A DNA stretch of 64,000 bases from Fonticula alba ATCC 38817 (lineage: Eukaryota; Protista; Nucleariida): NCBI GenBank assembly GCA_000388065.2, contig KB932202.1, one strand, 5' to 3'. Below, piece by piece: positions 14,727 to 54,231 of the stretch. The notes beneath the pieces were generated by a model. It ran no database searches and had not been told where the DNA came from. It saw only the letters and a list, made by a program, of their open reading frames with translations. The position numbers were made by a program, and so were the translations under genes. Numbering within the stretch: the stretch's first letter is position 1; each line of letters begins with the position of its first letter.

Positions 14727-17700
14727 GGTATTCCGGCGGCGGGTGCACGCGGCGATGCACTTGCACAGGGGGATGGGCTTTGGACGAGGGGCTGCGGAGC
14801 AGCTTTCAAGAAGCCTGTGCCAGACGGACGGCCCAATCGAGTGAGCAGGGCGAAGTTGAGGGGAGGGGAGGGGAGGGGAGGGGANNNNNNNNNNNNNNNN
14901 NNNNNNNNNNNNNNNNNNNNNNNNNNNNNNNNNNNNNNNNNNNNNNNNNNNNNNNNNNNNNNNGGTTTCTCTTCGCCGCGGCCTTCGTGCCGCGCCACAG
15001 GGGGGGGGGGGAAGGGCGCCCAGGTGGGGTTGACGCTCGAGCGTGAGGATGCGTCGGCGCGCGCACACTAAGAGCTATCCAACACGGGTCATGGGGTGGC
15101 CTGGGCGGAGACCAAGAGCTGAGGGGTGTTCAAAAAAAAAAGAGCCAAGTTAGAAGAGTGGAAAGGGTGCGCCGACGGATGAAGGGCGACGGCGCATAGG
15201 CGCCAGTGCCCGGCGGGGGAGGGGGGGACATGGCCCGACGGGTGGGTACCTGATGAAGGGGAGACACAAAGCACGATGCTTACAGATGGCCGAGGCGGGA
15301 AAGGGGTCTCTGGCTTGGCAGCGCGGGTGACTGATCGAATGGAAGGTGTCCGGGTACGGGGGCGGCAGGAGTCTTTCTCTTGTGACGAGCTCTAAGCAAT
15401 GAGGCTGAGACGTGGTTGACGCTGAGGGGAGCTCTTGCACCGGAGGCGGAGCTTGGCTGTGGGCGCGGGAGTGCGTGGGCGCGAACGCGAGTGTGCTGGG
15501 GCCGTCTCAACCGGGGAGAAGGAGCCTGCTCTGTGAGTCCAAAAGCGGAAAAAGCACGATGTCGGGAGGGAGACCGGGGGGGGGGGGGGGGGGGCGACAA
15601 GCAAGGCAGTGGCCGGGGGTGTCAGTGTCCGTATGTGACAGGCGATTGGGATGCTCATGACATCAGCTTGCTCCAAGGCCGGCGGGGGCAGGACCCTGGT
15701 GAAGCAGACCAGAAAGAGGGGATATCGAGGCAGGGGGGGGGGGGCTGGAGGGGACAGAGCGATGGTGCCAGGGAAGCGAAGGCAACAAGTTGGATGGCAA
15801 GTGGCCTCCTTGTCCCCGCTGGATCTGTCTTTACCAGGACAAGCAATCGGCCTTTCACCGCCGATGCTGAGGGTCGAGGGGAAATGCGAGGCCGTGACTC
15901 ACACGCAAGGCAAGACAGGGGACCAGGGGATCGACAAGATCAGGCACAACCTCACCGAGCGTCTAGGCGCGGTCGAAGGAGGCAGTGGCGCGGAGGGGAG
16001 ACGAAGTGGGGCAACAGAGAGTAGAGAGAAGGGAGCGGTCGAGCACGAGGAGGGGTGGGAGGAGAGGCGACAGATGGGGGGAGGGGAAAAGACCTGGGCT
16101 GGATCGAAACGAAGTGGTATACACGGAAGCGCAGGCTATTCGGCTGTGATGCAGTGTAAAAAAAATCGCCCACACGGGGGCCCAAGTCGACATCCCCAGC
16201 CTGTCCCACCCGGAGAGAGGGCGACAGAGCGAGAGCAAGAGAGAGAGAGAGGGGGGGGGAGGGAGAGGGAGAGAGAGAGAGAGGACGAGCGAGACAGCCG
16301 GGGAAAGAAAGCACACGAGAGATGGCTGGGTGTATATCGGGGGGCTGTGGGCAGCACCCCAGTCAGACATGTCATCGGCGCAGAGGGTCTGCCTCGGACA
16401 CGCGCAAGCTCCGGCTCGTGCCAAAGCATGCACGATCGGCGATGGAAGGTCTTTGGGGGCGATCGCCAAAGGGCCCAGTCCGGGCGGTGGACCGCCGTGA
16501 GATGTCATCCGGACCTTCGGACCATAACGGCCCTGGAGATGATGGGCACATTGCCGGGCGGGGGGGGGGGGGGTGCAAAGTATACGTCCCAGCCCTCGGC
16601 GCTCCGGGGAGGGCCAGCCGTCGATCGAGGGGCACCAGCTTGGTGAAGCAGGCCCTCCGCCGTCAGCGTATCGTTTGCACAGACACACCCTCATGCCGCG
16701 TTGGCCTGTCTGTCCTGGACGGGACGCCGCGGCCCCCTGAGAGCGGGGATCCTCCTCGGCATTCCCCAGAGCCAGGGGGGGCGGGACGGCGAGTGGCCAG
16801 TAAAGCGATGCACCGCCCCAGGGTTGTGGAGGGCGAGGGCGGGGGGGGGGGGGGGGCCGGAGACAGCAGCCGGCGGGGAGAGTGGGAGAAACAAGCACCG
16901 GGCGCGGGCGCCCCTGCTCGCGCGCCGCATGAGCGCCAGCACGCGCCGCATAGCAACGGCACCCCCTTCGACCGGGACGACAACCACCGCCGGGTCGGGG
17001 ATGGCTCAGCGAGCCCGCGCCCGCCTCCGTGGCCGAGAGCAACAACAGGTATTAACACACCTGCTTGTTCCCACCCCGGGGGGGGGAGGGGGGGAGACAG
17101 GACGCCCTCGGTCGACCTCCCCCACAAGTCTACCTCCGCCGGATGGCGCCTGCGGCCGGTGTGTCACAGGCTCGGCAGATAGATCGGTCAGCTGCTGCCA
17201 GCGGTGGCCTTCTCCACCAGGCCGGGTGATGCATTTCCCGCCTCGATAAGGTCGCCGGGTCTTTGGGCATTACATCAGCTACGGTGCTGCCGCCTGGAGG
17301 CTGAGGTCGGGCGCGTGGAGAGGGAAGGGGGAGGGGCGCGCGGGAACGAGGGGCGAGGTCCAACTGACCCCCCGCCCCTACCCCCCAGCCCGGACCCCGG
17401 CGGTCTGCCAATGGAGCCCGGGGGATGTTCCCATCGGAAGGAGGCGTCCGGTTGTGGGTCTGGCTCCATCATCCGTGTGCGCCAGCCCGCCCGGCTTATC
17501 TCCCCGCCTGTGTGACGCCTGTGGGCTGGGGGGGGGGGGGGGGGGGGACCAGGGCGGTGAGGGAAAACCGGCTAGAACGAGGGACAAAGAAAGAGACTCA
17601 TTGACTCAGCGTCTGAAACCCGGGGGGAGAGGGGGGGAGAAGAAAACCAAGGAGGGGCGGGCACCCACAGAGCGAACGCCCTCAACAACCCCCGCCCCCC

Positions 17701-44821: not shown

Positions 44822-45338
44822 GGGGAGAAGAACACGAGGGCGGGGGTGTCGATCTACAAGCCGGACGTACGTTCACCAGGCCCGAGGCGTTCTTGTCGCG
44901 GATGAGATCCTGCGCACGAGCAATGTAATCGGCATCGATGTCGACACCCTTGATGCGGAGTTGGCGCTCGTTGATGATAGAAATGTTGTTCAGGAGGGCA
45001 GCCGCGGTGCCTGAAATGCCGGGATGCGGCGCGTGAGGTTGGGCGTGGCGAGAGGGGAAGGGGCGAAGGCAGGAGCCACGCTCCAGAGGGGAGGAGAGGG
45101 GGGGGAGGAGGAGGAAACGCACCGACACCGACATCAAGGACGCTGGACTTGGCCGGCAACTTCTCCAACACGGTGCGGTACCACTCGGAGGTGAACCAGA
45201 CGATGGCCGCGTCATAGATGGCCGCACGAGTCCAGCGACGCCAACGGTCGAACCTGCTCGGTGACAGGGGGACAGCGGGGTGGGAAAGGGGGAATTGCGC
45301 GAATGCAAGTGTTTTGGCGCGCATGTGTGCGAGCAGGG

Positions 45339-45392
<54 letters not shown>

Positions 45393-46542
45393 GGGGGGGG
45401 GAGGGAGAGAAGGCCAAGGGGAGGAGGAAGAAAAGAGATGGGTGCTTGGTTGCCAGCGCGTCAGGTGCTTTTGTGTGATCATCTACCAGCGCGCGCCAGG
45501 ACTCCGACGGAGGGGAGGGCGGACCACAAAAAAGGCCCGCGGGAGAAGAGACCGGGCAGCCCTCGATCCAGTGCGAGGAGTGGGCAGCCCCCCGAGGGCG
45601 TCTTCCATTCTCCTGCGGCCTGTGTGTCAGCAGCATGGTGGCCGTGGCTGGCGCTGCGCGCGGGCACCCTCGTGGCTTCCCCCGCGCCGGACATTGCCAA
45701 GCGAAGCCACCAGCCGGCCCGCAGCCACGGTCTCCTCTAGCCCGCCAAGTAGGCCCGAGCAACTGCCAAAGGGTTGCTCCGGGTATCGGGCTGGGCAGGG
45801 AAAGGAGGGTGTGGGTGTGTGGAGACCTTGGCCGCTGGCCGGTGGATGGGCATCGGGACGGGGGTATGCACGTGCATGTGCGCGCGCGCGCGCGCGCGTG
45901 CGCAGACGGCCAGGCAAGCGCACAACCGGCAGTCCGCCGCCCCTCCTGGAGTACATGGCCAAAAGCTGGCTCAGACCTTTTACTGTGGACATCATGTGCG
46001 CGTGCATGGGCCGAGAGGAAGAGGGAGATCGGAGGAGCGTCGTGTAGGGAAAGCGCACAACCGGCAGTCCGCCGCCCCTCCTGGAGTACATGGCCAAAAG
46101 CTGGCTCAGACCTTTTACTGTGGACATCATGTGCGCGTGCATGGGCCGAGAGGAAGAGGGGGGGGGGGGGGNNNNNNNNNNNNNNNNNNNNNNNNNNNNN
46201 NNNNNNNNNNNNNNNNNNNNNNNNNNNNNNNNNNNNNNNNNNNNNNNNNNNNNNNNNNNNNNNNNNNNNNNNNNNNNNNNNNNNNNNNNNNNNNNNNNNN
46301 NNNNNNNNNNNNNNNNNNNNNNNNNNNNNNNNNNNNNNNNNNNNNNNNNGGAGGCGGCGGGAAGGGGGGACGCACCACTGGGGCCACGATTCGTTCTCGG
46401 GCGCGGAATAGACCCCGGCATAGGCCAGCTCACGGAGGGACTCCTTGGAGGCGTGCGGGTTGTTCGATGCCGCGACCTCGCGAGTCTCGGGCGGCAGCAG
46501 GTCCTCGGGGTACAAGTTGCTGTTGGCACCGGATTCAGCCAT
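44297..46542 (-). CDS. Class I SAM-dependent methyltransferase (unknown substrate)
   Basis: Exons 45253->45123, 45010->44871 and 44713->44297 encode motif I VLDVGVGT, IKGVDIDADY, FDAVYFSGSFMLL, LLKEGGLLYF. A probable first exon 46542->46376 (MAESG...ESWPQ, phase 2, GTGCGT donor) splices in phase to the 45253 exon (WPQW-FDRW). That link crosses an N-gap and is less certain. Confidence 0.82.
45456..46001 (-). ncRNA. Candidate intronic composite box C/D + H/ACA scaRNA-like guide RNA (U5 U41 2'-O-methyl guide; U2 psi34 guide)
   Basis: Minus strand. Box C-like ATGATGT (45995-45989), guide AGTAAAAGG-T, box D' CTGA (45974-45971). H/ACA-type hairpin 45792-45739 directly followed by box H AGAGGA (45738-45733). 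Second long hairpin 45730-45642, then ACA at about 45627-45625. C'-like GATGATCA (45483-45476) and box D CTGA (45464-45461). 4-bp terminal CGCG/CGCG stem. Lies in the sense orientation within a long intron. Not verified by covariance search. Confidence 0.6.
46026..46053 (+). other. Illumina TruSeq adapter remnant (assembly artefact)
   Basis: AGATCGGAGGAGCGTCGTGTAGGGAAAG differs at one position from the TruSeq read-2 adapter start AGATCGGAAGAGCGTCGTGTAGGGAAAG. It sits between two identical 110-bp copies (45916-46025 and 46051-46160) next to an N-gap. Confidence 0.95.
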
Positions 46543-53910: not shown

Positions 53911-53992
53911 CACCGGCGACAGGATTTGAACCTGTGCGGGCAGAGCCCATCTGATTTCGAGTCAGACTCCTTAACCACTCGGACACACCGGT
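53911..53992 (-). tRNA. tRNA-Ser(CGA), intronless, 82 nt
   Basis: ACCGGTG-TG-TCCGAGTGGTTAAGGA-G-TCTGA-CT-CGA-AA-TCAGA, long variable arm GGGC/GCCC, T arm ACAGG-TTCAAAT-CCTGT, G73 discriminator. Followed by a T-run terminator (TTTCCTTTT). Confidence 0.97.
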
Positions 53993-54149: not shown

Positions 54150-54231
54150 ACCGGTGTGTCCGAGTGGTTAAGGAGTCTGACTCGAAATCAGATGGGCTCT
54201 GCCCGCACAGGTTCAAATCCTGTCGCCGGTG
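54150..54231 (+). tRNA. tRNA-Ser(CGA), intronless, 82 nt, identical to the minus-strand copy
   Basis: Same cloverleaf; anticodon CGA at 54183-54185; TTTTT terminator at about 54238-54242. Confidence 0.97.

Follow-up and report, generated by a model that had tools for sequence, protein, structure and literature searches.

Position 34 of U2 snRNA (position 35 in yeast) is pseudouridylated opposite the branch-point adenosine, and this psi34/35 is among the most conserved modifications of snRNAs. In vertebrates, SCARNA8 (U92) guides the modification at U2 psi34, and in Drosophila scaRNA:PsiU2-35.45 does so (PMC7960923, PMC5733568); both guides are free-standing double-hairpin H/ACA RNAs with ACA and CAB boxes. 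The equivalent U2 psi35 of S. cerevisiae is the product of the stand-alone Pus7, which differs in being a protein-only enzyme that works without a guide RNA (PMC5733568, PMC7960923). Since SCARNA8/U92 and scaRNA:PsiU2-35.45 restore psi35 in pus7-deleted yeast (PMC5733568, PMC7960923), the heterologous assay proposed in an earlier note on the DNA described here is already established. A further lineage, U87/U88 (SCARNA5/6), guides U5 Um41 (PMC7960923, PMC5733568), and the insert between boxes D′ and C′ of vertebrate SCARNA6 is an H/ACA domain in the consensus structure. Fusions of C/D and H/ACA guides have been described as an animal feature (PMC7671301, PMC4041459). In U85 (SCARNA10), for instance, guides for the 2′-O-methylation and the pseudouridylation of snRNA are likewise joined in one RNA (PMC4041459, PMC5733568); both of them act on neighboring positions of U5, whereas those of the Fonticula alba RNA presented below would act on U5 and U2.

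The window analyzed here is the whole stretch of 64,000 nucleotides taken from contig KB932202.1 of Fonticula alba ATCC 38817. On its minus strand lies a SAM-methyltransferase-like gene with exon 1 at 46542–46376 and exon 2 at 45253–45123, the motif VLDVGVGTA spanning exons 2 and 3. The first intron of this gene, about 1.1 kb long (45254–46375, minus; donor GTGCGT, acceptor at 45254), hosts a predicted scaRNA of about 546 nt (45456–46001, minus) which is bounded by a C/D terminal stem, GCGC/GCGC. Its 5′ module has the order AUGAUGU-CCAC-AGUAAAAGGU-CUGA, in which box C (AUGAUGU, 45989–45995, minus) precedes an antisense element to U5 loop 1, AGUAAAAGGU, and box D′ (CUGA, 45974–45971), the latter two together occupying 45971–45984 (minus). 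An insert of about 490 nt separates D′ from the 3′ module (45461–45482, minus), which consists of box C′ (AUGAUCA, 45482–45476), an 11-nt guide, CACAAAAGCAC (45465–45475), and box D (CUGA, 45464–45461). Methylation by the D-box guide would fall on the fifth base of GUGCUUUUGUG; no target of this guide was found.

Several features of the surrounding DNA concern the assembly and its repeats. Just 3′ of the scaRNA, (CA)n is repeated over about 50 nt (45340–45390, minus), and inside the scaRNA (GC)n extends for about 22 nt (45877–45897, minus). The host intron also contains an assembly artifact, in that a segment of about 110 nt, box C and the U5 antisense element among its contents, is present twice (46160–46050 and 46025–45915). 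The junction between the copies (46027–46050) is the tail of the Illumina TruSeq universal adapter, apart from one mismatch. A gap of 178 N (46172–46349) adjoins this artifact (46027–46160), and an X6 contig diverges from the assembly beyond 46018. Elsewhere in the window, two tRNA genes (53911–53992, minus, and 54150–54231, plus) face each other head to head with about 160 nt between them, each at 59.6 bits with Rfam.

By its letters, the predicted RNA at 46001–45456 has the C/D scaffold that defines the U87/U88 (SCARNA5/6) lineage. The module for U5 Um41, formed by box C, AGUAAAAGGU and CUGA, is identical to that of SCARNA6, and the 3′ layout of SCARNA5/6 recurs as AUGAUCA-N11-CUGA followed by the GCGC/GCGC stem: in both, a long insert sets C′ far from D′, C′ is of the UGAUC type, a short guide precedes box D and a terminal stem closes the RNA. 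They differ in length, the vertebrate RNAs measuring about 265–275 nt as opposed to about 546 nt in Fonticula alba, and in the D guide, which is AAGUUUUCAAG (for U4 Am65) in vertebrates and CACAAAAGCAC in Fonticula alba. The Rfam SCARNA6 model left the RNA unscored even at E ≤ 10, presumably due to the insert of about 490 nt where the model has about 200 nt. More generally, Rfam scans of the window, of 2.5 kb and of 576 nt, at the gathering threshold and at E ≤ 10, gave no match on the minus strand at this locus, H/ACA families included.

Relatives were sought among JGI and ENA metagenome contigs with the pattern UGAUG-N3-7-AGUAAAAGGU-CUGA, which is matched by 116 loci (L001–L116). Only three of the 20 representative loci scanned with Rfam, the vertebrate-type L005, L014 and L067, score as SCARNA6 at 108–135 bits, and their 5′ module is identical to that of the window RNA. 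More than 20 further sequence families, ranging in G+C from 0.30 to 0.70, carry a CUGA box 250–510 nt downstream, after which comes a stretch able to form 5–10 bp with the bases preceding box C. Most of them resemble SCARNA6 and the window RNA in the unusual C′ box UGAUC, located 10–20 nt before box D. Judging from this layout, the loci not named by Rfam have the appearance of U87/U88-type scaRNAs from protists, algae, fungi or invertebrates that have escaped annotation. Locus L107 (G+C 0.40) has the guide CACAAAAGCAA, nearly the same as CACAAAAGCAC. The L007 group shows a center of the form hairpin-ACAUCA-hairpin-ACA; its members, like those of the JAABU group, are too alike internally for an analysis of covariation. 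A parser based on the minimum free energy (MFE), which looked for the order hairpin-H-hairpin-ACA, was dropped as it failed on true SCARNA6 too. When the Fonticula RNA was compared with the 116 metagenomic loci by blastn, only the C/D′ module matched, and a close relative was not found.

The earlier note, made from the letters alone, had described an H/ACA hairpin within the insert whose pocket fits the branch-site region of U2 and selects psi34. On re-reading the window, the letters at 45792–45733 (minus) match that description exactly. The candidate 5′ guide hairpin (45739–45792, minus) is closed by a lower stem AGCCC/GGGCU, and its parts, read along the minus strand, are the lower stem 5′ strand AGCCC (45792–45788), the 5′ pocket strand GATAC (45787–45783), the upper stem 5′ strand CCGGAGCAAC (45782–45773), the apical loop CCTTTGGCA (45772–45764), the upper stem 3′ strand GTTGCTCGGG (45763–45754), an unpaired CC atop the pocket (45753–45752), the 3′ pocket strand TACTTGG (45751–45745), a single C (45744) and the lower stem 3′ strand GGGCT (45743–45739). 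Directly after the lower stem stands AGAGGA (45738–45733, minus), a candidate box H which fits ANANNA. Folding of this 60-mer with RNAfold yields a 6-bp lower stem, AGCCCG/CGGGCU, the pocket and an upper stem of 10 bp; a single bulged G interrupts this upper stem, where the earlier drawing had a G·G mismatch. With a lower stem of 5–6 bp, a pocket and an upper stem of 9–10 bp containing one irregularity, the hairpin has the shape of an H/ACA guide. The spacing agrees as well: from the upper stem to AGAGGA the guide spans 15 nt, or 13 when counted from the first paired base of the pocket, in keeping with the rule of 14–16 nt between the target and box H/ACA.

The energy of the 60-mer is −24.7 kcal/mol as against −21.1 ± 3.0 kcal/mol for dinucleotide shuffles (z = −1.2). 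The RNAfold check thus bears out the H/ACA-compatible shape and gives no advantage over shuffled sequence; the hairpin is thermodynamically unremarkable for DNA of 63–70% G+C.

Pairing was assessed against the conserved segment of U2, from which Fonticula's own U2 may differ. This 5′ region is near-universal from yeast to man, and its positions 27–40 we take to be UCAAGUGUAGUAUC, that is, UCAAGUG-UA-GUAUC. The strand GAUAC is fully complementary to G36–C40, while UACUUGG pairs with U27–G33 through a G·U at both ends. Against this segment, the base pairs of the earlier scheme are correctly counted, with 5 + 7 base pairs, two terminal G·U pairs and U34-A35 left unpaired. In its target site and in the logic of its pocket, the hairpin proposed here resembles the 5′ hairpin of SCARNA8 (U92) and Drosophila scaRNA:PsiU2-35.45. 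It differs from guides of the SCARNA8 type in being embedded in a C/D-terminated RNA, without ACA after the second hairpin and without UGAG in the loops, and no sequence homology of the Fonticula RNA to SCARNA8 or scaRNA:PsiU2-35.45 was detected. Two details of the pocket weigh against its use, namely the unpaired CC at its top and the G·U pairs at both ends of the 7-bp helix.

The sequence on either side of the hairpin agrees less well with an H/ACA RNA. A candidate 3′ hairpin (45642–45730, minus) can be drawn with a lower stem CCGUGGCUG/CAGCCACGG, an upper stem GUGGCUUC/GAAGCCAC and a UUGGCA loop. The box ACA expected directly after this hairpin (45730–45642) is absent, its place being taken by CCACCAUG; the nearest ACA triplets form the non-canonical ACACACA (45621–45627, minus), 14 nt past the 3′ hairpin and with CUGA directly upstream. 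Furthermore, when upstream sequence is included, the global MFE structure pairs 45842–45821 with 45737–45713, segments of the minus strand which are near-complementary (about 22 of 25 nt). This long helix takes up the GGA of box H as well as the 5′ strand of the 3′ hairpin, and it moves the lower stem of the guide hairpin to an alternative register, GCCCAGCC/GGCGGGC (from 45796, minus). At −111.4 kcal/mol, this fold is about 10 kcal/mol better than the one in which box H is forced free (−100.8 kcal/mol), and in the ensemble computed for this longer RNA the last three bases of box H are paired with a probability of about 1. Inside the long helix would lie the guide hairpin together with a CA/CU-rich loop of 28 nt, CCACACACCCACACCCUCCUUUCCCUGCCC. 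Words like GGCCAC/GUGGCC are abundant in the region and make many alternative pairings possible, so that any single fold is tentative. A reading as telomerase RNA, prompted by CCACACACCCACACCC at about 45822–45807, was set aside, CA-rich low complexity being common here.

A further proposal of the earlier note concerned TTGGCA, found in both apical loops (45769–45764 and about 45700–45695), as a possible divergent Cajal-body (CAB) box. This proposal finds no support. The loops read CCUUUGGCA and GCUUGGCAAUGU and contain no UGAG, the known CAB consensus to which TTGGCA bears no likeness, and TTGGC is not a motif common to the family. The sole UGAG of the whole RNA overlaps D′. UUGGC occurs four times in the RNA, where a rough estimate from composition predicts about 0.6 occurrences.

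How often such a pocket arises by chance depends on where it is looked for. In the window as a whole, a bipartite 5 + 7 match with at most two G·U pairs occurs four times, which is the chance level expected from composition. A fuller scanner demanded at least 11 pairs, the stems, the box and a spacing of 13–17 nt, and was applied to both strands and 21 U2 uridines; about 1.5e-4 of all window positions satisfy criteria simpler than these. Besides the hairpin described here, it returned three further H/ACA-like hairpins, at about 16200 (minus, U2 U37), about 40840 (minus, U2 U44) and about 63091 (plus, U2 U15–17), or about three comparable hairpins per 128 kb. These three offer 13–14 bp to U2, look like chance matches and served as background; the one at 16200 lies within CT-rich, possibly intronic sequence. 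The hairpin taken alone is therefore not significant, and since comparable ones are expected by chance genome-wide, the weight rests on hairpin, box and context together.

Within the 546-nt RNA the same pocket is much rarer. Dinucleotide shuffles of this RNA gave a guide hairpin for U34 in none of 1500 cases, under criteria looser than what is observed, and one for any of the 21 U2 uridines in 13 of 1500. The background from real sequence agrees with the shuffles, at about 6e-4 per uridine per 546 nt, and for any of about 25 known snRNA pseudouridines we estimate a p of about 0.01 within an RNA of this length. In the context of the scaRNA, the pocket match is thus unlikely to be due to chance. 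The pocket is not a common trait of the family: when 25 RNAs of the family were compared with U2 and U5, the window hairpin was the only match, the same scanner finding no U2/U5 pocket in the 24 others, including the inserts of true SCARNA6.

Signs that the RNA may be made come from metatranscriptomes. Mapping covered 45395–46030, which avoids the (CA)n tract, the N-run and the adapter junction, and 45865–45910 was skipped as a repeat; raw-read RNA runs of a second organism were left out, as their many unrelated studies suggest a different and commonly studied organism that has this DNA as a passenger. The gut metatranscriptome X11 contains contigs that are 100% identical to 45476–45725 and 45799–45977, and the compost metatranscriptome X14 a contig that is 100% identical to 45465–45669. 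All of them are confined to 45465–45977, with a depth of 4–6 and flanks of 61 and 29 nt, contigs of this kind showing presence and not absence. Both metatranscriptomes have zero depth at 45395–45460 and 45989–46030, and no contig crosses the ends of the stretch. The 3′ limits in these two independent datasets lie 1 and 12 nt from box D. The hole in X11 (45726–45798) is the hairpin itself, and neither metatranscriptome covers the hairpin. In the Organism-A 'RNA?' runs, coverage is even across the stretch and its flanks, and these runs do not discriminate. The limits of the contigs agree with an RNA whose ends were cut back to the C/D stem, but with neither a lariat nor an unspliced transcript. 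A stable lariat is rejected, the 3′ part of the intron (45395–45460) being at zero depth in both metatranscriptomes; two separate small RNAs are unlikely, as neither half has a complete C/D pair.

Taken together, we lean towards a hairpin that works as a guide for U2 psi34/35 and is set in a SCARNA5/6-type, C/D-terminated, intron-encoded RNA of Fonticula alba. Of the earlier proposal, the hairpin, its pocket, box H and the spacing obey the rules for H/ACA guides, and the pocket picks U34 (yeast U35) in a scaRNA context where such a match is not expected by chance; the fold is not favored over shuffles, no ACA box follows the 3′ hairpin, and no counterpart of the pocket was seen in relatives. 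In a rival explanation the RNA is real and the hairpin purely structural, a part of the insert of a box C/D scaRNA that binds no H/ACA proteins and fits U2 by coincidence. Such a structural role would agree with the global fold in which a long helix consumes box H, with loops that lack the CAB motif UGAG next to a missing ACA, with the failure to detect the pocket in other family members, true SCARNA6 included, and with the chance hairpins at 16200, 40840 and 63091. It also has precedents in the human long box C/D scaRNAs mgU2-47 and U90, whose structured internal hairpins are not of the H/ACA type (PMC4041459). We nevertheless regard it as rather unlikely, given that an in-context pocket for U34 with stems, box and spacing has a chance of about 6e-4 (about 0.01 for any known snRNA pseudouridine) and that vertebrate members of the scaffold do have an H/ACA domain. 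U2 psi34 is, moreover, a known target of guide RNAs in animals, which counts for a guide function of the hairpin.

Two other explanations appear less probable still. According to one, there is no stable RNA at all, the hairpin being a chance product of intron DNA and the signal stemming from unspliced transcript, DNA carry-over or two flanking fragments. This is difficult to reconcile with two independent metatranscriptomes that stop at 45465 and 45476, near the D box, and at 45977, leaving the ends of the stretch uncrossed, with a box C/D scaffold whose layout is conserved across many eukaryotes, and with the presence of both C and D box, which a single flanking fragment would not have. The evenness of the Organism-A 'RNA?' runs over stretch and flanks speaks for it, as do the position of the X11 hole exactly at the hairpin and the short flanks of 61 and 29 nt, next to which three contigs would fall inside the RNA by chance with a crudely estimated probability of about 0.06; chance hairpins of this kind are also expected genome-wide. 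On balance, we hold this explanation to be improbable. The hairpin might also be a genuine H/ACA guide for a substrate other than U2 U34, such as rRNA, another snRNA or mRNA, for a bipartite match of 10–12 bp is not rare in several kb of rRNA (roughly up to 0.1 with freedom of register). Considering that the match falls on a known and conserved snRNA modification site, and that the other guide of the RNA likewise aims at an snRNA, at U5 loop 1, this seems more improbable than any of the explanations above.

If the hairpin does serve as a guide for U2, the intron would be spliced first, and trimming of the RNA would then stop at its C/D terminal stem. Box H, AGAGGA, and the hairpin would be bound by the set of Cbf5/dyskerin, Nop10, Nhp2 and Gar1, and in the pocket GAUAC would pair with G36–C40 and UACUUGG with U27–G33 of a Fonticula U2 that presumably matches the reference at positions 27–40. 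U34-A35 would stay free of pairing where the upper stem begins, 14–15 nt from box H, and U34 (yeast U35), opposite the branch-point adenosine, would be isomerized by Cbf5.

Even if the hairpin is only structural, the annotation gains one more U87/U88-type scaRNA. Beyond this locus, the scaffold of the U5 Um41 guide is widespread and mostly unannotated, and it offers a handle for finding the scaRNAs of protists. Fonticula branches deeply on the fungal side of the opisthokonts, and a guide for U2 psi34/35 in this organism would be relevant to whether the ancestral mechanism relied on a guide RNA or on Pus7; it would also make the animal-type joining of a methylation guide to a pseudouridylation guide within a single Cajal-body RNA older than animals. 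We tentatively entertain, as a possibility that we do not favor, that composites of the U87/U88 lineage predate animals, that the intronic RNA of Fonticula, with a working pocket in its H/ACA module, services both U5 loop 1 and the branch-recognition region of U2, and that psi34/35 was guided by RNA in an early holomycotan lineage and came to be made by Pus7 in yeasts only later.
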